Sequence record: MW749003.1
Direction: 5' to 3' (one strand)
DNA: 64,000 nt
Each line of letters opens with the position of its first letter. Position 1 is the stretch's first letter. The translations under genes and the position numbers were made by a program. The notes under the pieces are model-generated. The model searched no databases, was not told the DNA's origin, and worked only from the letters and a program-made list of their open reading frames with translations. Below are positions 20,515 to 57,800 of this stretch, in pieces.

Positions 20515-20697
20515 TTAAATCACTCCATTTTTCTTTTATTTTATTAACTTATTTATAATATATTCTTTAATCTTTTTTTATTTTTAGAGAATTAATTATA
20601 ATAAAACAAAATTATAATAAAATAAACCCCTCAATAAAAGCAGAACAATATTGTTTAATTAAACCAAGGATATCAGATAATGATATCCTTGGTTATT

Positions 20698-21384
20698 TTA
20701 TTCTTCATCTTCAGTAAATTCTACTACATCATAAATATTTCCATTTTCATCTCTTGCAATGTATTCCCCATTTTCTTCTGTAATCTCTATTTGCAGATCT
20801 GGTAATTCAGCATCTTCTATAATATTATAATCGCCATCCAGACAATAAATATTTTTCTCCATATCTACTACATATTGATAGTCATTTATTTTTTCCTCTA
20901 TTACTGTCTCTTCCTTTTCAGAATTGCTTTCATTTTGTTCTTCTTTCAATCTTGCTTCTAATAATGCATCTACTTCTTCATCATTTTTCTGTGATCCAGA
21001 AATATCTTCAGATTCTTGTTTATTTATAATTTCACTAAATTTTTTATCTTTTTTATTATTAAGAATATAATCATGAACACCAGCAACAATTTCTCTAATA
21101 TCAGAGTTATCGCCACCCTCTTGATTTCTTTGATTTTTAAGTGCAATATCAGCCTCAGTTTTCTTAGCATTTACGATTTGCTGAATGATAGATATCTTAC
21201 CAGTTTTAAGTGAAATTAAATTAGAAGTTTGTTTTTCTATAAATGTAAGAGTTCCATTACTGCCACTATTTTTAACTTTATCATAATGCTCTTTTGTTTC
21301 ATCATATAATTCATCGATTTTTTCTAATTCATTCTGAAGAATACTTAATTCTTTAGAAATATCGATATTAATATTATCAGCCAT
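20698..21384 (-). CDS. Hypothetical acidic coiled-coil protein, late class
   Basis: 228 aa; late promoter AACA ttatat TA at 21413-21424; hairpin at ~20663-20695. Confidence 0.8.
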   Translation of the reverse strand: MADNINIDISKELSILQNELEKIDELYDETKEHYDKVKNSGSNGTLTFIEKQTSNLISLKTGKISIIQQIVNAKKTEADIALKNQRNQEGGDNSDIREIVAGVHDYILNNKKDKKFSEIINKQESEDISGSQKNDEEVDALLEARLKEEQNESNSEKEETVIEEKINDYQYVVDMEKNIYCLDGDYNIIEDAELPDLQIEITEENGEYIARDENGNIYDVVEFTEDEE

Positions 21385-21446
21385 TTTTTATCACCCCTAT
21401 AATATTTAATACTAATATAATGTTCCGTATTAAAAAGATTTTCAAG

Positions 21447-21456
21447 TATATATTAT
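21447..21456 (+). promoter_or_regulatory. Early promoter-like TATATATTAT
   Basis: The motif sits immediately upstream of the structured intergenic region. Confidence 0.6.
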
Positions 21457-21776
21457 TACTGTGACGATATCGAAGTAATAGAATTTCGTCATAATTCCTA
21501 CGGTATCATTGTAGGGTAATTTTCTTAGATATTGTTCATTTACACGGACTCAAACATGTTCCCGTAGCTGTAACAATAAGAAACACAAAAACTAGTAATA
21601 AATAAGGTAATAAAAGAATGGTTGGAAAGACAAAAATATTCATCAGGCTACATACCACGAAAAGTGTATTGAACGAATGACAATACCCACCTAGTGATTA
21701 TAGCAAGATCTTTCACCATTCTCCGTATCCTTATAAAGAGAAAAAGGATTTTTTAAAATGGAGAGGAGAATACGCT

Positions 21777-21857
21777 ATGACAAACACAGTTGAGAAAAAT
21801 GATTGTCTGGGAAAATTCCCTATTGATGCAGTAAGAATTAGAAGTTCTATTATTTAA
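21777..21857 (+). CDS. 26-aa small ORF MTNTVEKNDCLGKFPIDAVRIRSSII
   Basis: Strong RBS GAGAGGAG 8 nt before the ATG; lies inside the structured transcript. Confidence 0.45.
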   Translation: MTNTVEKNDCLGKFPIDAVRIRSSII

Positions 21858-21879
21858 ACATATACGACGACTACTTTTA

Positions 21880-21917
21880 CTATGGGTGGGGGCAACCCCA
21901 CCCATAGGGCTTTTTTT
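21880..21917 (+). terminator. Strong intrinsic terminator
   Basis: CTATGGGTGGGG-GCAA-CCCCACCCATAG followed by GGC and T7. Confidence 0.9.
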
Positions 21918-21966
21918 GGTCAATGTATAAAGATTTCGTCAAAATACTTAATGGGGAGGTTTTTGA

Positions 21967-22740
21967 TTGAATTGGTTTAAAAGAATGTTTATGGCAAAGG
22001 AGAAGGATAAGGAAATTGATTCACTAAGAAGGATGGTTGAACAGAGTAATGAAACTATTAAACTCATGGATGGTGTCATAAAAAGATTAGAGGATAATAT
22101 GACTAAATCCAGACAAGAATCAGCAGCAACTCTTCAGGAAGAAAAAGAATATCAAGATCAAATGAAATTGGAATCAGAAAGGATGCGGGAATATGAATAT
22201 ATTCAAAATGCTCAAAAAGTTGTTTCTACTTATTTAACTAAATATCTAGATCGTTTTAATCTAATTGAAAATCGTTTTTCACTTGCTCATAATATAGATC
22301 TTCTTTCTAATTCTGATGACTTAATGTTTAAAATTGTACAAATGATTAAATTGTCTAAGACAAGTGTTGAATTTGCTACTGTTTGGAACAATCATGTTAT
22401 AAGAATTAGTATTGATAATGATGAAGATGATGTATATTATAGTATTAATGGTGGAAAAAATCTAAGTTCCGACATTGTAGGAACCAAATTTCTTACTAAA
22501 TTTAAGAAGGATATCCAATTAGATATATTGAATTTTCCATGTGTTCAGACAAATAAGATTTACGAAGTAACTGGTAAAAAGTACAAGTATGTCTTAGCTA
22601 ACTCAAGAAGAGAATGTTATTATATACTTAAAGATAAAGAGATGAAAACAAAAATAAAAGAAGTTAGTTTTGTTGAACCAAGTGCATATACACGTTCTAT
22701 TAGATCTAGACTAGTATATGTAGTGCCTCATCAAACTTAA
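21967..22740 (+). CDS. Hypothetical protein with N-terminal coiled coil
   Basis: 257 aa; GGGGAGG RBS and TTG start. Confidence 0.8.
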   Translation: MNWFKRMFMAKEKDKEIDSLRRMVEQSNETIKLMDGVIKRLEDNMTKSRQESAATLQEEKEYQDQMKLESERMREYEYIQNAQKVVSTYLTKYLDRFNLIENRFSLAHNIDLLSNSDDLMFKIVQMIKLSKTSVEFATVWNNHVIRISIDNDEDDVYYSINGGKNLSSDIVGTKFLTKFKKDIQLDILNFPCVQTNKIYEVTGKKYKYVLANSRRECYYILKDKEMKTKIKEVSFVEPSAYTRSIRSRLVYVVPHQT

Positions 22741-22782: not shown

Positions 22783-25700
22783 TTATTCCCTAGTTAGAGA
22801 ATAGATTGCTTGTATTGCTTCATTCCCAATTTGGCGGGAGTTTCGACCCATTTGATCTAACATATTTTTCTTTTCCCATATTAGTCGTTCTGCTTCTTCA
22901 TTAGCTTCTTTACTAAATACTCCACGTAGAGATACTGTATCACCCAAAATCTTCCAGTAGATTCGCTACATCTACTGCGTTCTCTTATGAACTGCTCTAT
23001 ATTACTATAGAGATGAGACTATATCTTCACAATATAATTGTGCCCTCCGTTTCCATTTAAAGAGGAATTATAACCTTATTACGGAATACCTCTACCGCTT
23101 GGCTGTACTCTACTCCCTTCCATCTAACTAGCGTTATCACAGCGATCTGTTAGAGTGGTTTCGATAGTCGTTGAACCTTCATCTTTAAATGAATTAAAGA
23201 CGCTTGGATGCTGATTGTCCATATAGGATTTTCCAGCAGTTAAAAGGGTTTTACTACGACAGTAGATTATTATCTTTTATAGGTAAATACTAAATTACCA
23301 CAATCCCATATTCTTTTAAATCTAGTTTTATCCATGATTTCAAATTCAGTACTATTATCACTATATAATTTTGGAAATTTCTTTTTGAGATTAGACTTTC
23401 TATAATTAAATCTATGGAATCGTTGAGTTTTTTCAACATTAACATACCAATAGTTGGGTTTACTAATATGACTTAATTCAAATTTATTATTGATATAAAC
23501 ATTACCATCTGACCAGCGTCTATCTGCATAGGTTATTAATTCTTTCCACTCATAATTTCTCTCGAAGTATTTGAGAAGTTTACTAAAAGCACCTATTACT
23601 CTATAGTCCATATCGGTAGCGAATCTTGATAGTTCAAAAATATTATCAACACTATTTCTACCTAGACTTTTTCTAAGTTTACTAAAAGTCATAACCGCTA
23701 CAAGTTCATCGCCATCTTCTTTTGGAAGCCATAAGCCTAATTTAATTGATGACAAATCTTTTCCCTGAATGTGATTTCTTTCTAGGAATTCATTTTTAAA
23801 ATTGTTATCAATTACTTCTACATAACAATTTCTAGCGTATATTTTAGTAGAATTATTTAATTTTAGTAAGTGTCTTATTTTTTCTTTTACTATGAGAGGT
23901 TTGTTAACCCATTCGTCTTCAAAAATTTGAATTAGTCTAATCCCTTTACTATTACATTTTTCTAATTTTTCTAAATGATAGTTTCTTTTCTTCCCCATTT
24001 GCTCTGAATGCCAATATAAACCATTAAATTCAAAAGCAATTTTTTTGGAAGGAATAAATATATCAATCTCTTTACCTTCAAGTAATTTCCTGTCATTACA
24101 TATGACTTTATCTACAACTAATCCTTTAATAAAAGAAGATAGTTCTTTTTCCATTTTTGATGAACTTTTAAATGCACAATATGGACATCTATTTCCATTA
24201 TTAAAGTTTTTAATTGTAACTTCATACTCCTTATTACAACTATGATGTAACAACCTAATCTTCGTTTTATTATTACGATATTCACCTAATAATGAATACT
24301 CATTATTTGTAACTAAGCTAATTTTTCTTTTAACCTCATCAGTAGTTAGCCTTCTTTTACCAGAACATTGAGGACATCTATTTTTCAAAGCATAATAAGG
24401 AGTAGTCTTCCATTCATAATTACAGTCATTACATCTGAAAAGTATTTTGGTATCGATATTGATATATTTCTCAAGACTTATAAGTCTTCCATTAGTCTTT
24501 TCTTTTAATTCCTTCTTAAACTCATCATTGCTTTTTAATCTTGATTTACCTTTATTAATATCAGCACACTGAGGACATCTACTACCATTATGAAATATAT
24601 CAGGTCTAACCTCATATATATTTCCACATAGTTCATGCCTTAATTTGATTTTAGTCTTATTGTTAATATATTCATTGGATAAAACTGTATAGGTATTGTT
24701 AGTTAGTAATTTAACTTCTTCTTTGAATTCATCCAGTGTCTTTTTGCGTGGCATACACTAATACCTCCAAATAATTAATAATTATTTGTTTATTTGACAC
24801 TGTATTCCCTTAAAAAGAAATAATATTGAATTTATCGTAGTCCCCGCCTAAAGCCTTTAAATAACCATTATAAGGAATTACTGTATCAACAAAAAGTTCA
24901 TCCTCTGCGGGATAGTCAGGGTATATAACAGGATAATCAGGTAAGTATCTATCTTCCAGCTTTTGAGGTCGTGTTTCTTTTGTTGAGAGAATTCTAATTT
25001 TACTTGGATAAATATTCTATAGTGATAGGTAAAGATTTGATATAATCTCCTCTTTTTCCCCCACTTCACACCCTACGTGCGACTTTCACCGCATAAGGCG
25101 TTCCATCAAAATATATTATTTTGACTATGACCCTTCGCTCCAATGGAGTTACCCATCTTCATAACTACTATGGTCTGCTGACTTTCTATATAAGAGTATC
25201 AACTATAATTTCTCTTATATAGAATCTCTGACGTTCCGTAAATGATAGTATAGCTATAACTTAGATGCCTTCTGCCCTATATAAACTTCTATTGTACCAC
25301 ACTTTACAATCAGGTCGTTCACCAGTACCGTATTACTAAACCCTGAATTTATATAGTATAAAAAGGTTCGTGTTCCTCATCATATTATAGCACCGCCCAC
25401 CCTATCTATTAGTATTATAGCATTACTAATATTCAGATGACTTCACCTAACTTCATACAAATATTTTATATAGTTTAAAATAGATGCATGTAGGAGTATT
25501 AGCGACAAGTCTTCAATGAAAATGGTCATATCTTTTACTTGTTCTCATTTACAGTTTAGATTATAAAATCTACTCCATTTCACATTAAATGCTTATAGGA
25601 GAACGTCACATACGATACTGCTCTATTGGATATCTTGTTACATATACATGTTTATCTTTGGTAATATCAACTGCCGCAATGAATAGAATATCAGTTAATG

Positions 25701-51838: not shown

Positions 51839-54800
51839 TTATTCTGAATATATTTTACCAATTTCTCGTTTAAGATGTACTAATGCTTTGTTTAAATATA
51901 GAGCATTATAAATATCAACGGTCATGCGTGAAACAATACTCAATGGACTCATAATAGCTTCAATATTCTCATCTGGATCATTCTCACTAAAAGGCTCTTG
52001 ATCTTTAGGAATAACATCAGATACAATTGTTTTAAGTGCTGTATAATACGTAATCTTATCTCCAATACCAAGTTCATCATCATACTCAATATAAATCTCA
52101 ATGAGTAGTCCGTCTACTTCAGTACCTTTAATTTTCTCACCTGATTGCTTTTGAATAGGTTTAAGATTAACAGAAGTCAGATCATTAGTAACAGACTTAA
52201 TCTTATCTTCTTTCTTCTTACTATCTTTAATATAGTTCTTCAGAATCTTTTGTACTGAAGGAGAAAACTCACTGATATCTTTATTGTAGTACATTACAAC
52301 ATCTACAATCTTACCAGTATATTTAGAACTTACTTTGTTCTTAGATAACTCATTAATAGTCTCATTAAAGTCATCTCCTAGTTTATCTAAGAGTTGGTTG
52401 AGTGATTTATCTTCAAAGGAGTTTTCAAAGATAATCAATGGATCACCAGTCTTAACCATATCGCCTTTCTTAACAATAAAGTCAATGTTTGAGTTAACTC
52501 CAAGAGCAAGTTCTTTCTTCATAGTAATTTTAGTAGATAGGTCTTGAGATAAGCTTTCTGTAATAATACTACTATCTTCATAAGTGTAATCTGCGCTTGC
52601 TAGTGCTACTTTACAAAGCTTCCCTGTAGTATACGTGATATCATCTTTCTTATCGCCAAGGAAGTAACTTGGATTCTTCGCTAGGATATCATCTTTTTTG
52701 AATTTCTCTCCTACTTTGATAATGAGTTCTTTACGATTAGCAATGTAAACAATTATCTTCCACCAAATTCGCTAGTTTTGGTGCGCCCTCTAACGGACTG
52801 CTCCATGTTACCATGAAGTTGAGACTATATCTTCAAAGTTCCCTGTTTCCCAGTATACATAAATAAAAGTATACCAGATTTCATCTCAGAAACCTGCCAC
52901 CAATCGCTTGTGGGGTACTCTACTCATCTTTATTAATAAGATTTTCGATAGTCGTTGAACGTTCTCTATTAGTTTAATAGAGCTTCGCTTCTGATTATCC
53001 TTTTAATAAGGACTTCCCAGAAATTAAAGGAATTTAACGTGAGCCTTTAAACCCACCATTACTATTCTTACTCATATGCTCGGAGAGATCAATGACGTCT
53101 TTCTTACCATCATTATAACGAACGACAGCTAGCTCATGTTCTTCATCTATGGACTCTAGAACTCCATCTTTTTTTGCTCTAAACACAAAGTCGTCACTTA
53201 GAATATAAGCAACAGTCTTCTCTACACCACTACCAAATAGAGGTTTAGATTGCTTTGTGGTAGGAATGATCGTTAACTTCCATTAGATTCGCTACGTCTA
53301 ATGCGTTCTCTTATGAACTGCTCTATATTTCTATAGAGACGAGACTATATCACTATCCTTAATAATTAAGGATAACTCCCATTTCCATTTAAGGGATTCT
53401 CACCCACTCCAAACACTTGAGCCGTACTCCTATTGCGGAATTTCACCGCTACTCACAATCCTAAGATTGCTTTCGGATAGTCGTTGAACTTTATTCAAAA
53501 GTTTTCTTTAAGTATTCTTCTAGATTACTTAACTGTGTATAATTGAATCTGAATAGTTTATAACCCTTTCTTTTACAATACTCATTTTTTAGATTATCAC
53601 GGAATTGTATATCCTCTAAGCCTTCTTCTCCACCAAAAAAATCAGATGGCTTAAAATGTTGCTTACCATCATATTCAACTAATATTTTAGTTCCGTCCTC
53701 ATCTTCAAAATAGAAATCAAATCGTAATCTTCTTCCTGTTTTTGGATTAACTAAGTCTGAAAATGATTTTTCAATTTCAAAGTAGATATTATTCTGGTTG
53801 AAATAATTAGTAATAATTTGAATCCCACTAGAATTTCTTCCAATTCCATTACTACAATGAGGACATCTGTACCCTAAAATAAAGTTATTTGGCTTTATCT
53901 TAAAAGTTTTTTCACATTTTCCATGATATAATGTAACATGTTTGTGAGCATGGGTATATTCATTTGTTAGAGAATATTCATTACCAACCAATTCATAAAG
54001 TTTTTCTTTAAATGTCTCTGTAGTTCTTTTTTTAGTTTTAGCACAATTTGGACAACGATAACCAGAAAGAAAATTTACAGGTAATACAGAATATTCATTA
54101 CCGCATTTGTTATGTCTCATCTTAACGTGAGTCATATTGTTTATATATTCAGAAGTAGGTTTATATTCATTACCGACCAATTCTTCAACTTTTTTTCTAA
54201 AATCAGAATCGGTTCTTTTTTTATTTTTAGCACAATTTGGACAACGATCTCCTCGTCTGATAAACTGATATGGTTGAACCTTATATTCATTACCACATTT
54301 ATTATGTCTAAATAAAATTTTAGTATGCTGTGCTAAAAATCTTCCTAATACCACATATTCATCACCAGTTAATTCTTTTACTTTCTTTACAACTTCCATA
54401 TGTTTTTTATTCAATAAACAAATTGGACATTTAGTTACTTTATTTTTCTTAAAGAAACTATCTGGTCTCATTTCAAATGTACTATCGCATACTTTATGAT
54501 AAAATATAGCATTTATAGTTGATGATATATATTCTCTAACTTCAAATTCATTATTATATACATCTTTTAATCTTCTAGAATAAACTTTACTTAACATATT
54601 ACACCCTCCGACAAACAGTTGTAATAATATGTTAAATTATTTAAAAACTATTTTGAATATTAGCTGCTGATTCTCCAATTCTATTAGTTTTCAAACCTTC
54701 ACGCTTATTATTTCTAATTACGTTGTGGTCTAATAGACTCTAAGGAATTTCCAGCAATTAGAGAGTTTATCTAATAGTATTACTACTATTAGGCACGAAT

Positions 54801-57800
54801 CATGCTTTTGTTGGGTACTCTGCATGCCTACTCGTGGAGGATCAGCATGCCTTACTGTAAAGGAGTTCAATAATTCTGCTGGACCATAGATATTTGTCGT
54901 GTTATTTTTTGTATTAGGATTGGTGTCTAAGAATCCTCGTGTGTTTTTAAATGCTGGATCAAAAGTTAACTGTCTAACCCATTATCTTCATATAGGTTCG
55001 CTACACCTATACCGTTCTCTTATGAACTGCTCCATGTTACCATGAAGATGAGACTATATCTTTATCTAGTCAAAAAAAAAGAAAGGAGATGACTAGATAT
55101 CTCCCATTTCCATTTAAGGGATTCTCACCCACTCCAATCGCTTGAGCCGTACTCCTATTGTGTGTTAACCACTAAAGGATAGTCGTTGAACGTTACTCTC
55201 GTTATAATTAAAAATAATTTATAAAATTATTATTTTATTTTTTCCATAATAGTAGCTCTCCTTTTTAACTTACTACTATTATAATATATTTAACGAGAGT
55301 CTTCGATACGGATTGTCCTATTATTAGGAGTTTCCCGTAGTTAGAGAGATTTTATCATTATATATCACTATATAAGGGGGCAGTTTAATTCACCCCAACT
55401 TTCATTATCTTCCACTAGATTCGCTACATCTAATGCGTTCTCTTATGAACTGCTCTATGTTTCCATAGAGATGAGACTATATCATCATCCTATTAGGATG
55501 CCTCCCATTTCCAACTCCAATCGCTTGAGTTGTACTCTACTCCCTTCCACTAACTAGCGTTATCACAACGATTTGTTAGAGTGGTTTCGATAGTCGTTGA
55601 ACCTTACTCTAATGAGTCTTGGATGCTGATTGTCCTTAAAGGATTTTCCAGCAGTTAAAGAGGTTTACTTATAATATTTCTATTATAAGGGACTATTATA
55701 AATCTTGTCTGGAAATTCAAGAATTATAATAATTCAATCCGAGTCGGGCGTTGACATTGCCATGATTCCACGCATACTAGGGTCATAAGCTCGAATATCA
55801 GTTGTATAAGCATCCGTTTTCCTTCATATAGGTTCGCTACACCTATACCGTTCCTTAGAACTGCTCTAAGTTTCCTTAGAGACGAGACTATATCATCACT
55901 TAAAAAGTGCCTCCCATTTCCAGCCTCAATTGCTTAGGCTGTACTCTACTCCCTTCCTACTAACTAGCGTTATCACAACGATCTGTTAAAGTGGTTTCGA
56001 TAGTCGTTGAACCTTTACCTTATTACAAATAATTTGTAACTTAGGTACTTGGTTGCTTATGATTACCCAATCCTTTAAATTTTTACCATACCTGAATTGT
56101 TATATTCAGCCATCTATTATGTTTCCATATAGATTTGGTATTAAAGGCTCTAAGGGTTTTCCAGCAGTTAAAGAGGTTTTAATTGGACTAAAACACTTTA
56201 ATCCAAGTTCCTTCCTGAAAGCCCCTTGTAAGTAGCCGCACCACCCTTTTCAATTTCCAAAGAAGGGTTAAGGACACTATATTCATCGACAGTAGGTGAA
56301 TTCATTAATGTCTTTAATAGAATATCCTGTGGAACAGACATCTTAATAGGATTACCAGCTTTCAGTGTATCCTTATACGTTTTAAATGAATCTGCCAAGA
56401 TTTTATATAGATAAGCATTTACTTGCTCAGTACCACGGATTCGATATGAATTCATATCATTCAGTGGACTATAGCTCATATCTTCCAATAAGGTATTCGC
56501 ATACAACAATATGTCATAGATATTCTCAGGTAATTCTAACTGTTTCAGCACATCTAATGTGATAGGATCAACCATTAGAGATAGAGTATTGTGAAGACCT
56601 TTACCCATATTTCTACTACCGAACATCTCATAGAAAGTCTCAATATAAGGATCTTTAGAGTTCATTTCTTCAAATGCATACTCTTCAGTAGCCATAGTAC
56701 TTAGACCACTTAATAATAGGGAATTTCTCAATAAAGAATTATTATAATATAGGTATCCATCTTTAAAACGGATCTTATCATAGTCATCATCAATTGTAAT
56801 TCTCTTATTTTTAGTATCAAAGCTATATTCAATATTATATCTTTCTAATAAATCTTCTAATCCTAATTCATATCCAAGAAGAACCACTAGAGGGATCATT
56901 CTATTATTAATACGAACTCGGTTATATGCTAGAGACTTAGAATTACTTAAAGAAGATAATTTTTTATAAGCTTCCTCACTAAGTGAAGTGACAACAACTT
57001 TAATAATGAGTTCTGAAAGACTCATATCAGTATTTTCTTGTTTCTTATTATTAATCAGATAAACTCTTTTACTTGAACGATTAAGAGCAATAACGTTTTC
57101 ATTATCTTTTGTATGACCGATTGGTAAGAATTGTTTATCATCAATATTAATCTTAGCAAGCTTAGCCATATTATCAAGATCACTTTTCAATAAATCTTCT
57201 ACTTCTTTTTGACTGAACATAAGTTTATATTCATCATTCTCTAAGCTTAGAAGGAAAGAAGAAATCTCATTATATTCAAGAGTTGTTTCATAACCCTCAT
57301 TAATTGTTAGAGCGTTACCTAGGCGATAATTAAACTTCTTACCTGATACCTTAAATTCATTTAAATCCATACCAAAGAGTTTCTTAAGTTTCTCAGTTTT
57401 ATGAGATAATTTAGAACCAAAGCGCATGACAAAAAACTTATTGTAGTTAGTAGTAATCTGAACTTCATCAGGTTTTGTTTTTACAATGGGCAAAGATAGA
57501 ATTTGCTTAAGAATTAATTTTTTACCACCATTAATATTCATAAACCTACCATCTCTGATAATAGGATAATCAAATTTAACAGTATGCTTTACATTACGAT
57601 CATCTTGGAAAGTAACAGTATAAGTTAATTTTTTTGATAAATCAGTAGATGTGTCTTCTGTTTTAATATCACTTACAAATAATTTAACATCGCTATCTCC
57701 ATTAAATGATGAAAGAACTGCAACTAAGTCTTTTTTCATCTGTTTTTCAAAGTAGCTCATATCAAAATCTTTGAGATTTGAATATCTAGTTTCTTCTTGA

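Follow-up and report, generated by a model that had tools for sequence, protein, structure and literature searches.

The transcription unit and its relatives

The window analysed here is a 64-kb stretch of DNA from the jumbo phage Bacillus phage vB_BspM_Internexus (AR9/PBS1 group). Between two of its genes lies a stand-alone unit that consists of an early promoter, an RNA of ~455 nt and a strong terminator, in a region where AR9 is annotated with the minus-strand protein gene g143, which is probably spurious. The sequence features listed in a first-pass annotation of the locus, including the early promoter, the ORF at 21777–21857 and the terminator, were all found in place. The unit and its immediate context are as follows.

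21413–21424, − strand: late promoter of gp24 (AR9 g142), AACATTATATTA, with its start at 21413; same intergenic region, outside the RNA
21425–21436, + strand: upstream promoter element CCGTATTAAAAA; CCGTAT[CT]AAAA is kept in most of the 11 intergenic regions
21444–21456, + strand: core of the early promoter for the virion RNA polymerase, AAGTATATATTAT, with transcription predicted to begin at G21463
21463–21917, + strand: transcription unit, structured RNA (fold z = −6.6; early expression of the g143 interval in AR9)
21880–21917, + strand: intrinsic terminator with a 12-bp GC-rich stem (21880–21907), GCAA loop and U7
21967–22740, + strand: gp25 (AR9 g144), late gene directly 3′; context outside the RNA

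The promoter core fits the early promoter consensus of AR9, AAATATATATTAT-N6-G (PMC5312081), and the motif is perfect in nine metagenomic relatives. AR9 itself, in which the unit corresponds to positions 116,698–117,152, carries an A-to-G change in the core at this locus, and no transcription start site (TSS) is given at the element in its dRNA-seq data (PMC5312081). The CCGTAT[CT]AAAA motif also occurs upstream of many other AR9 early promoters (Table S2, PMC5312081). On the opposite strand, the AACA-N6-TA motif of the gp24 late promoter is kept in all relatives and the AR9 minus-strand TSS at 116648 corresponds to position 21413 of the window (Table S3, PMC5312081). Published RNA-seq of AR9 bears on the suggestion in the first-pass annotation that the unit yields a discrete transcript: the early signal is confined to the g143 interval (39/531/1798 FPKM, the first value being that at 5 min), compared with 0.43/42/246 for g144 and 0.76/166/7042 for g142, in a table that gives no strand (PMC5312081). 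The value of 39 FPKM at 5 min is an ordinary level for an AR9 early gene, and the 5 min signal falls ~90-fold across the terminator (PMC5312081).

Counterparts of the unit were recovered, via a protein database and contig look-ups, from BpSp and nine metagenomic relatives, giving 11 sequences in all with Internexus; the flanking proteins of these relatives are merely 37–56% identical. A search of IMG/VR for further relatives returned AR9 itself only, along with six 16-mer matches attributable to chance, and metagenome and genome contig collections yielded none by protein patterns or by a 23-base DNA pattern. The element is single-copy, occupying one place per phage genome, with one copy within the window. 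The locus is situated in a cluster of replication and recombination genes. The neighbouring proteins fall into PHROG families of unknown function and gave no match in Pfam.

The element was proposed in the first-pass annotation to resemble no tRNA, tmRNA or intron, and ARAGORN and Rfam searches bear this out: ARAGORN found no tRNA or tmRNA genes in the window, Rfam 15 gave nothing above noise at E ≤ 10 for 21300–22050, and the element in the ten relatives gave nothing at E ≤ 1, with 6S also unmatched. A match to a known Rfam family, which would have removed the novelty, was thus found neither at the element nor in the window around it nor in the relatives. A gathering-score Rfam scan of the window returned introns only, outside the element. 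A miniature inverted-repeat transposable element was considered and rejected, as dispersed copies are lacking and each phage genome has the sequence in one place; a replication origin was also rejected, there being no GC-skew turning point at 21.4 kb.

Folding of the RNA

Folding of the whole RNA gave z = −6.6 for Internexus, relative to dinucleotide shuffles, and −6.2 for BpSp. The recurrence of the architecture in ten diverged relatives, together with the z-score of −6.6, indicates that it is more than chance. A long-range stem is present in the minimum free-energy (MFE) folds of 11/11 sequences, and the following elements can be delineated along the RNA.

21465–21534, + strand: 5′ arm of the panhandle P1, a built-in antisense to the ORF (MFE pairs, arm duplex test, core covariation)
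21518–21531, + strand: P1 core within the 5′ arm, AAUUUUCUUAGAUA; conserved, with covariation
21532–21545, + strand: 5′ strand of helix Py, UUGUUCAUUUACAC; pairs with 21664–21676 in 11/11
21544–21565, + strand: hairpin H2, ACGG...CCGU (RNAalifold pairs, compensatory changes)
21564–21569, + strand: 5′ strand of helix Px, GUAGCU; pairs with GGCUAC at 21646–21651
21570–21615, + strand: A-rich linker; sequence not conserved in the alignment
21616–21630, + strand: 5′ strand of helix P3, GAAUGGUUGGAAAGA; closing stem in 11/11
21646–21651, + strand: 3′ strand of Px, GGCUAC (RNAalifold)
21664–21676, + strand: 3′ strand of Py, GUGUAUUGAACGA (RNAalifold)
21709–21721, + strand: 3′ strand of P3, UCUUUCACCAUUC; closing stem in 11/11
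21718–21724, + strand: anti-Shine–Dalgarno (anti-SD) segment AUUCUCC; its AUUC (four bases) is common with the P3 3′ strand
21760–21771, + strand: Shine–Dalgarno (SD) region, GGAGAGGAGAAU; near-invariant in all relatives
21777–21857, + strand: micro-ORF of 26 aa, MTNTVEKNDCLGKFPIDAVRIRSSII; an ORF of 26–41 aa follows the SD in 11/11
21804–21866, + strand: 3′ arm of P1, inside the ORF and just beyond (MFE pairs, arm duplex test)

P1 joins the first nucleotides of the RNA to the body of the small ORF through 40–80 bp in 11/11 relatives; in Internexus the MFE fold has 80 pairs from 21465:21866 inwards. The 5′ arm begins at nucleotide 1–3 of the RNA in 10/11 sequences and at nucleotide 12 in BpSp. 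The duplex is long and near-perfect, with 85% Watson–Crick pairs, and arms from the same sequence pair with −39 to −70 kcal/mol, compared with a mean of −25.5 kcal/mol for mismatched arms. In the core, 11 of 17 pairs have double changes, a number equalled in one of 1000 shuffles, and 85% of cells are paired versus 46–55% with the partner slid (counts of pairs and changes in the helices were made with our own script on the 11 sequences). As judged by this sequence comparison, the P1 arms co-evolve lineage by lineage. Wobble pairs outnumber A–C mismatches by 33 to 20 (p = 0.1, a strand-neutral count), which does not in itself prove selection at the RNA level. Only in Internexus and BpSp does the 5′ arm bury the AUG, and the predicted accessibility of the SD is moderately low (0.14–0.56) and unchanged without the 5′ arm. 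In PBS1 a natural deletion of 109 nt (21459–21567 in window coordinates) has removed all of the 5′ partner strands and the phage is viable; the lock is therefore dispensable in the laboratory.

This arrangement differs from the series of local hairpins that the first-pass annotation had drawn for the 5′ half. Two of these stems, GTGACGA/TCGTCAT (21461–67/21487–93) and CCTAC/GTAGG (21497–01/21512–16), can be traced in the sequence but are not conserved structure, and the first 72 nt folded alone gave z-scores of only −1.7 to +0.9 across the 11 relatives, which speaks against all three proposed stems, including the long irregular hairpin. The long-range pairing of the region with the ORF (P1) and with 21646–21676 (Py and Px) had been missed. 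Stems assigned further 3′, namely GAATGGTTGGAAAGA/TCTTTCACCATTC (21616–30/21709–21) and GTATTG/CAATAC, are present.

The 250-nt spacer between the P1 arms has RNA-type helices of its own that include G–U pairs. Py, H2 and Px occur in 11/11 sequences with compensatory changes: RNAalifold recovers Py with UA-to-CG changes, H2 has a GC pair in six or seven sequences and AU in two or three, and Px reads GUAAGCC:GGCUUAU in the relative L016, with extensions that covary in BpSp, L018, L020 and L021. The covariation that the first-pass annotation had called for in relatives is thus seen. The conserved sequence blocks of the element lie in this central domain, not in the peptide, and some of them are unpaired.

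P3 (GAAUGG/CCAUUC; in BpSp GAAUGAUAUAUU:GAUAUAUCAUUC) encloses a domain of near-constant size (86–106 nt), for the interior of which a single consensus fold was sought across the relatives and not obtained. The anti-SD (ATTCTCC in the DNA, 21718–24) does lie opposite GGAGAAT (21765–71), and its proposed competition with the preceding stem is kept in 11/11 sequences, with 97% of the cells of the anti-SD:SD helix paired. The anti-SD:SD helix and P3 overlap and are both conserved, as in a riboswitch-type expression platform. The energy gap between the two conformers is 0–9 kcal/mol in 10/11 sequences and about 15 kcal/mol in L019. Most sequences, when folded into the Py/Px conformer, have all or the greater part of the SD region base-paired. 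P3 and Py/Px could also form together, as a pseudoknot, and would then not constitute a switch.

The micro-ORF, the terminator and gp25

The chance of so long an ORF is 0.02–0.10 per sequence. Substitutions within it are spread evenly over codon positions and are mostly non-synonymous, and indels comprise whole codons; in BpSp, the ATG frame is not that of the family. The peptides are 8–32% identical to that of Internexus, with only M1, one Lys and one Glu nearly invariant, and they are hydrophilic (GRAVY −1.16 to +0.80; maximum over a 15-aa window ≤1.47, below the value for a membrane helix). These patterns of sequence change show the ORF, SD and AUG to be maintained by selection and the peptide sequence not to be. 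The first-pass annotation was right in seeing a discrete, structured and uncharacterized early transcript with a sequestrable ribosome-binding site (RBS) and a small ORF; as for its label of ncRNA, the RNA is indeed structured, but selection keeps the ORF open, which the term by itself does not cover. The element constitutes a large RNA family, supported by covariation, that was previously undescribed and has no database entry.

The terminator has compensatory changes at six pairs across the relatives, and the distance from the ORF stop to its stem is an inconsistent 7–25 nt. Homologues of gp25 begin 22–50 nt past the U-tract at 10/11 loci and are absent in L019. No TSS is given for AR9 g144 (PMC5312081), and from the layout of the sequence gp25 must be reachable by read-through alone; we infer that the terminator shields this late gene from early transcription. 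The g144/g143 FPKM ratio in AR9 is 0.01 at 5 min and has climbed to 0.14 by 40 min (PMC5312081), an increase that may reflect late transcripts from upstream (AR9 plus-strand TSS 115851) or a polymerase that terminates less efficiently. Conditional read-through into the gene at 21967, as had been suggested, found no structural backing: no antiterminator is conserved, as the 5′ half of the terminator finds its best partner at non-homologous positions in different lineages, and the element pairs with the gp25 translation start no better than mismatched combinations do (−20.0 and −20.2 kcal/mol). The lack of an antiterminator homologous among lineages and of conserved regulatory codons speaks against a trp-type leader-peptide attenuator. 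An AlphaFold model of gp25 (pLDDT 80) gave no fold match in the PDB with E < 0.07.

Possible function and comparison with known RNAs

Since the peptide drifts freely, what the unit delivers is probably translation itself, or the RNA state that results from it, and not the peptide. We tentatively favour, at somewhat less than an even chance, a dual-function or leader RNA that locks itself and whose structure controls whether a regulatory micro-ORF is translated. As long as the RNA is closed, Py/Px and the anti-SD:SD helix would conceal the SD, and the built-in antisense arm would keep the ORF in duplex. Formation of P3 would draw the anti-SD off and permit ribosome entry, and the entering ribosome would have to unzip the panhandle. 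The RNA state arising from translation might then set the lifetime or the processing of a long RNase III-type duplex in which the 5′ end is buried. A more elaborate version, which we regard as decidedly speculative, would make the central domain a new riboswitch-like or protein-/ribosome-sensing switch that times ribosome entry, the unzipping of the 40–80 bp panhandle freeing a lineage-specific 5′ antisense arm that would determine specificity or immunity among related phages, or set the timing of the late gene gp25.

The transcript might instead act as a regulatory, decoy or scaffold RNA that binds a host or phage protein (RNase III, another dsRNA-binding factor or RNA polymerase) or a target in trans, the ORF serving just for ribosome loading or RNA stability. 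The location of the conserved blocks in the central domain instead of the peptide, the 85% Watson–Crick duplex, the protection of the ends by the panhandle from about +1 and by the terminator, the early expression and the unconstrained peptide would all suit such an RNA, but we consider it unlikely, as ORF, SD and AUG are retained in 11/11 lineages, complementarity elsewhere in the 64-kb window does not exceed chance (≤15 nt), 6S and other Rfam families are unmatched and a decoy that works by titration would be expected to exceed the 39 FPKM seen in AR9 at 5 min. The presence of antisense and target in one transcript, followed by a promoterless gene, also recalls an immunity-type cis-antisense module (like P1 c4–icd–ant or P4 CI), in which the 5′ arm, possibly processed, would block the micro-ORF and thereby gp25, with possible effects in trans on relatives that infect the same cell, or during pseudolysogeny. 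Arms that diverge fast and stay matched within a lineage follow the pattern of specificity determinants. This interpretation is nevertheless quite improbable, given that the pairing lies over the ORF body and not the RBS in most lineages, that L019 has the element without a gp25 homologue, that ORF and gp25 are parted by a strong terminator instead of being translationally coupled, that a processing signal was not found and that nothing in the fold of gp25 points to an antirepressor.

If regulated read-through of the terminator into gp25 were the real output, the element would be a riboswitch-like or leader-peptide attenuator. The position of the gp25 homologues shortly past the U-tract at 10/11 loci, the rising g144/g143 ratio in AR9 and the conserved central domain of constant size (86–106 nt) are compatible with this, but the lack of a conserved antiterminator, the inconsistent stop-to-stem distance and the absence of gp25 in L019 make it a poor candidate, and the late rise in FPKM may have the other causes given above. 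A type I toxin–antitoxin-like locus, in which 5′–3′ pairing would lock the mRNA of a small toxic peptide, is very improbable: the small ORF, the sequestered SD and the long-distance 5′–3′ interaction are reminiscent of hok, AapA1 and tisB, but the peptides are hydrophilic, without a membrane-helix window, and unconserved, neither an early-consensus nor a sigma-70-like promoter (the two types searched) was found on the minus strand within or after the ORF that could drive an antisense RNA, and PBS1 is viable without the lock. We give scarcely any credence to an element that acts at the DNA level, whether a replication origin built on an inverted repeat, a packaging site or a relic of a miniature transposon. 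The arms are mainly Watson–Crick, the wobble/A–C asymmetry is not significant and the locus lies within a replication/recombination gene cluster; against this, the left arm starts at the predicted +1 in 10/11 lineages, promoter and terminator bracket the element exactly, it is single-copy and without a GC-skew turning point, the spacer has RNA-type helices with G–U pairs, and neutral remnants would lose their pairing at such divergence of the flanking proteins.

The type I toxin–antitoxin messengers hok, AapA1, tisB and zorO are stable, structured transcripts with a small ORF, a sequestered SD and a long-distance lock by the 5′ end. The present RNA resembles them in its small ORF, its sequestered SD and the closure of the mRNA by long-distance pairing of the 5′ end (P1, 11/11), but its 5′ end pairs directly with the ORF body, over 40–80 bp, the peptides are hydrophilic and unconserved, an antitoxin RNA was not found in the promoter search and the gene is an early one of a virulent or pseudolysogenic jumbo phage. 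Among dual-function RNAs such as Staphylococcus aureus RNAIII (514 nt, encoding the 26-aa hld) and Bacillus subtilis SR1 (encoding SR1P), similar traits are the length of ~450–500 nt, the many helices, the long-range pairing and a micro-ORF of ~26–40 aa restrained by structure; in the present case no trans target is detectable in the window and the peptide is not conserved, and there is no sequence or Rfam relationship to either RNA. The c4 RNA of P1 and the CI RNA of P4 are about 77–79 nt in length, are released by processing and target RBS regions. As in the c4–icd–ant and CI systems, a single transcript carries both antisense and target ahead of a small ORF and a further gene, and the complementary pairs are lineage-specific; the antisense arm described here, by contrast, is the predicted unprocessed 5′ end and lies over the coding body. 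Translational riboswitches with an anti-SD platform likewise combine a conserved domain of constant size with a closing stem that rivals the anti-SD:SD helix, but the known aptamer classes are unmatched here and the interior of P3 has no one consensus fold.

To our knowledge, hardly any work has addressed regulation at the RNA level in jumbo phages; AR9/PBS1 serves as the model for uracil DNA and for multisubunit RNA polymerases encoded by phages. It is unusual for a messenger to carry, at its own 5′ end, the antisense of the entire micro-ORF body and to have an anti-SD switch as well. Such a design would make translation-coupled remodelling of an RNA amenable to study in a phage of Gram-positive bacteria. 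Should the central domain sense a signal, it would represent a new phage-borne sensor. PBS1 provides a ready-made natural deletion mutant for comparison.

Locus and early transcription

The element lies within a 582-bp gap between gp24 and gp25 of Bacillus phage vB_BspM_Internexus (MW749003, whose numbering the window shares), which is unannotated save for gene g143 of phage AR9. AR9, Goe21 and PBS1, uracil-DNA jumbo phages of the genus Takahashivirus, are 99% identical to Internexus across the region. The function of gp24 and gp25 was not recognizable from PHROGs or Pfam, nor from an AlphaFold model searched with Foldseek.

Features in and around the gp24–gp25 gap (window coordinates)
20616, plus strand: late start site antisense to g142 (AR9 115851), just 5′ of a hairpin at 20662–20694
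ending at 21384, minus strand: gp24 (AR9 g142), left flank of the element
21413, minus strand: g142 late promoter, with its transcription start at AR9 116648, just left of the early promoter
21425–21436, plus strand: CCGTAT[CT]AAAA motif, ~8–20 nt 5′ of the early promoter core, kept in most relatives
21444–21456, plus strand: early promoter AAGTATATATTAT
21753–21905, minus strand: AR9 g143 (50 aa), annotated gene crossing the terminator hairpin
starting at 21967, plus strand: gp25 (AR9 g144), right flank of the element

The early promoter agrees with the AR9 early consensus AAATATATATTAT-N6-G, which was defined experimentally (PMC5312081), and gives a predicted start at G21463; this and the other sequence features listed in the first-pass annotation were all found. 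RNA-seq of AR9 (PMC5312081 Table S4) assigns g143 39, 531 and 1798 FPKM at 5, 20 and 40 min, whereas its neighbours g142 (0.76, 166 and 7042) and g144 (0.43, 42 and 246) are typical late genes; at 5 min, early genes mostly show 25–100 FPKM and late genes 0–3. Set against its late-type neighbours, the 5 min value of g143 indicates that the early RNA is confined to the element interval, with a fall of ∼90-fold across the terminator. The FPKM table gives no strand; the plus strand alone carries an early promoter with a terminator downstream. The minus-strand gene g143 is probably spurious, and the element's own plus-strand RNA is the most likely source of the signal assigned to that gene. No start site is listed at the element in the AR9 dRNA-seq data (PMC5312081). 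At window position 21450, G replaces A within the early promoter core of AR9 (TATGTATTAT), a change that is unique among the close relatives and may explain the missing call. The CCGTAT[CT]AAAA motif also occurs in many AR9 early promoters of Table S2, among them those of g047, g048, g069, g108, g120, g169, g234 and g253, and appears to be a hitherto unreported upstream promoter element.

Conservation, panhandle and central helices

The element is a discrete, conserved unit running from an early promoter to a terminator. Among GenBank phages, BpSp is the sole diverged relative (gap identity of 69%, in patches only; flanking proteins 37–44% identical). A g142-family profile search yielded 30 homologues, and contig look-ups from these added nine loci that also have this gap (L014–L021 and L025); no further relatives came from IMG/VR, metagenome contigs or GTDB genomes. 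In the more distant g142 homologues (L022, L023, L024 and Listeria phage LPJP1) the gap is absent and gp25 mostly so too. All 11 full-length versions share the g142 late promoter, the early promoter, an RNA of 424–519 nt, the Shine–Dalgarno sequence (SD) GGAGAGGAGAAU, an ATG, an ORF of 26–41 aa and a GC-rich terminator with a U-tract of 6–7 nt; the upstream CCGTATCAAAA element is present in most. The region has no match to Rfam at E ≤ 10, to tRNA or to tmRNA, the last two as had been judged by eye, and the versions in the relatives gave zero Rfam matches.

The RNA 21460–21917 folds at −122 kcal/mol (z = −6.6 versus shuffles). The first-pass annotation had drawn a chain of local hairpins; in the minimum-energy fold, the 5′ 100 nt are instead joined to the small-ORF region by 80 pairs, which run inward from 21465:21866 as a single long, interrupted helix, and the first 72 nt folded alone do not exceed shuffled stability (z = −1.7 to +0.9 in 11 relatives). 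Such long-range pairs, 39–80 in every relative, finish just 5′ of the terminator, and the resulting panhandle, P1, begins at nt 1–3 from the predicted transcript start, or at nt 12 in BpSp. An alignment-free test shows that the P1 arms co-evolve: the duplex of each 5′ arm with its own ORF region has −39 to −70 kcal/mol, against a mean of −25.5 (s.d. 8.9) for cross-lineage arms, the only exceptions being the close relatives L014, L015 and L025. In the core that can be aligned (AAUUUUUCNAGAUA : UAUCUNGAAAAAUU plus UCAUUGUAG : CUAUGGAA), 85% of cells are paired versus 46–55% with the partner slid, and 11 of 17 pairs have changed on both sides, which one in 1000 column shuffles equals. A DNA-level element is a rival explanation here, and the strand-neutral mismatch count of 33 G-T to 20 A-C (p = 0.1) is alone no proof of selection on a plus-strand RNA; P1 is read as acting at the RNA level because the helix is in register with the transcript +1 and the terminator.

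The central helices, P3 and the anti-SD:SD pairing are likewise conserved. The Py and Px strands are among the most conserved sequence blocks of the element and are mutually complementary.

Central helices (window coordinates)
21532–45 : 21664–76, plus strand: Py, complementary conserved blocks UUGUUCA..UACAC : GUGUAU.UGAAC.A
21564–69 : 21646–51, plus strand: Px, complementary conserved blocks GUAGCU : GGCUAC
between Py and Px, plus strand: H2, a small hairpin

This arrangement was obtained by RNAduplex in 11 of 11 versions (−17 to −22 kcal/mol) and also by RNAalifold on a plain MAFFT alignment. Its 19 pairs are formed in 90.7% of cells, compared with 26–39% when slid. Compensatory changes include UGCUCAU:AUGAGUA with CACAC:GUGUG (L017, L019) and GUAAGCC:GGCUUAU (L016), and Px extensions covary in BpSp, L018, L020 and L021.

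The stem GAAUGGU..GAAAGA : UCUUUC..ACCAUUC (P3), already noted in the first pass, is conserved among the relatives; it encloses a domain of near-constant size (86–106 nt) and carries lineage-specific compensations, such as GAAUGAUAUAUU:GAUAUAUCAUUC in BpSp. P3 crosses Py/Px, so that the two must form either a pseudoknot or alternatives. The switchable ribosome-binding site suggested earlier also proves to be conserved: the anti-SD AUUCUCC pairs with the SD throughout the 11 versions (97% of cells), its AUUC is common to the 3′ strand of P3, and in constrained folds the `P3' and `Py/Px + anti-SD:SD' conformers are 0–9 kcal/mol apart in ten versions and ∼15 kcal/mol apart in L019. In the majority of sequences, the latter conformer leaves most or all of the SD region paired. 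The switch appears to belong to a larger alternative-pairing design.

Micro-ORF

The ORF is maintained without conservation of its peptide. It is open for 26–41 codons 3′ of the SD in every lineage (chance 0.02–0.10 per sequence), the other two frames of the same AT-rich stretch hold 33 and 38 stops in total, and lengths 5′ of the conserved core differ by whole codons. Identity to the window peptide is 8–32%, with only MxNT.. and LEK..E recognizable; substitutions are spread evenly over codon positions 1, 2 and 3, the majority being non-synonymous, and the micro-peptides are hydrophilic and without a membrane-helix window. In BpSp (L003 4323–4431, gp210) the ATG frame encodes the N-terminus MRNS.., but the conserved core ..PKLSMER.. 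is read from another frame, beginning at a GTG; a frameshift or else a sequencing error accounts for this. On the simplest reading of these sequences, selection would act on translation of the stretch and not on its product.

Possible function and relation to gp25

That the element is real is well supported. We tentatively propose, with somewhat less than even confidence, that it is a self-locking messenger or dual-function RNA, the outputs being RNA state, lifetime or processing together with insulation of gp25. In the closed form the SD would be paired and the ORF duplexed with an antisense arm from the same transcript; the SD would be released as P3 forms, and a translating ribosome would be forced to unzip P1. 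The state, lifetime or processing of the RNA, a long RNase III-type duplex whose 5′ end is buried, would be likely outputs, and the late gene gp25 would probably be insulated from early transcription. In its action the element would most resemble small-ORF messengers locked by fold-back, and dual-function RNAs. A weak point of the self-locking reading is that predicted SD accessibility is independent of the 5′ arm. A 109-nt segment (window 21459–21567) is missing from both PBS1 records, lost between CTGTGAC and CTGTAAC direct repeats. With it go the 5′ strands of P1, Py and Px and the whole of H2, while the promoter, P3, SD, ORF and terminator are retained. Lacking these 5′ partner strands, PBS1 indicates that the lock is dispensable for laboratory growth, and it provides a ready-made `open' mutant.

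Besides a DNA-level element, rival readings would make the locus a pure RNA regulator or decoy, an immunity module of the c4/CI kind, a type I toxin locus or a read-through attenuator. The element did not pass the tests that define type I toxins, trp-type attenuators and transposon remnants. Attenuation bears on the earlier suggestion that conditional read-through could control the gene at 21967. The gp25 homologue begins 22–50 nt past the U-tract in ten of 11 loci, and five of those distances are below 26 nt, leaving no space for a promoter. L019 has the element but lacks a gp25 homologue; in its place, a second hairpin (GAAGACTATGATA...TATCATAGTCTTC, L019 2378–2426) stands just past the terminator, facing the 3′ end of the convergent polymerase gene. 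Expression of gp25 must therefore depend on read-through, whereas the element can occur without gp25. For the conditional control, neither a conserved antiterminator among the relatives nor lineage-specific pairing of the element with the gp25 start region was found. The g144/g143 FPKM ratio climbs from 0.01 to 0.14 over AR9 infection (PMC5312081 data), which could reflect late transcripts entering the element from the upstream plus-strand start (AR9 115851) or a late polymerase that terminates less efficiently.

No description of an RNA at this locus was found in the literature searched, and it is a member of no Rfam family. Elsewhere in the 64-kb window, Rfam identifies nine group I introns and one group II intron (domains D1–D4 and D5/6).

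Intron matches (Rfam, window coordinates)
596–1942
22995–23306
25019–25559
52801–53085
55030–56243

One group I intron lies inside the virion RNA polymerase β′ gene adjoining the element, beside a Hef-like homing endonuclease gene (23270–24754); the small annotated CDSs 22783–22947 and 23124–23222 look like exon fragments.
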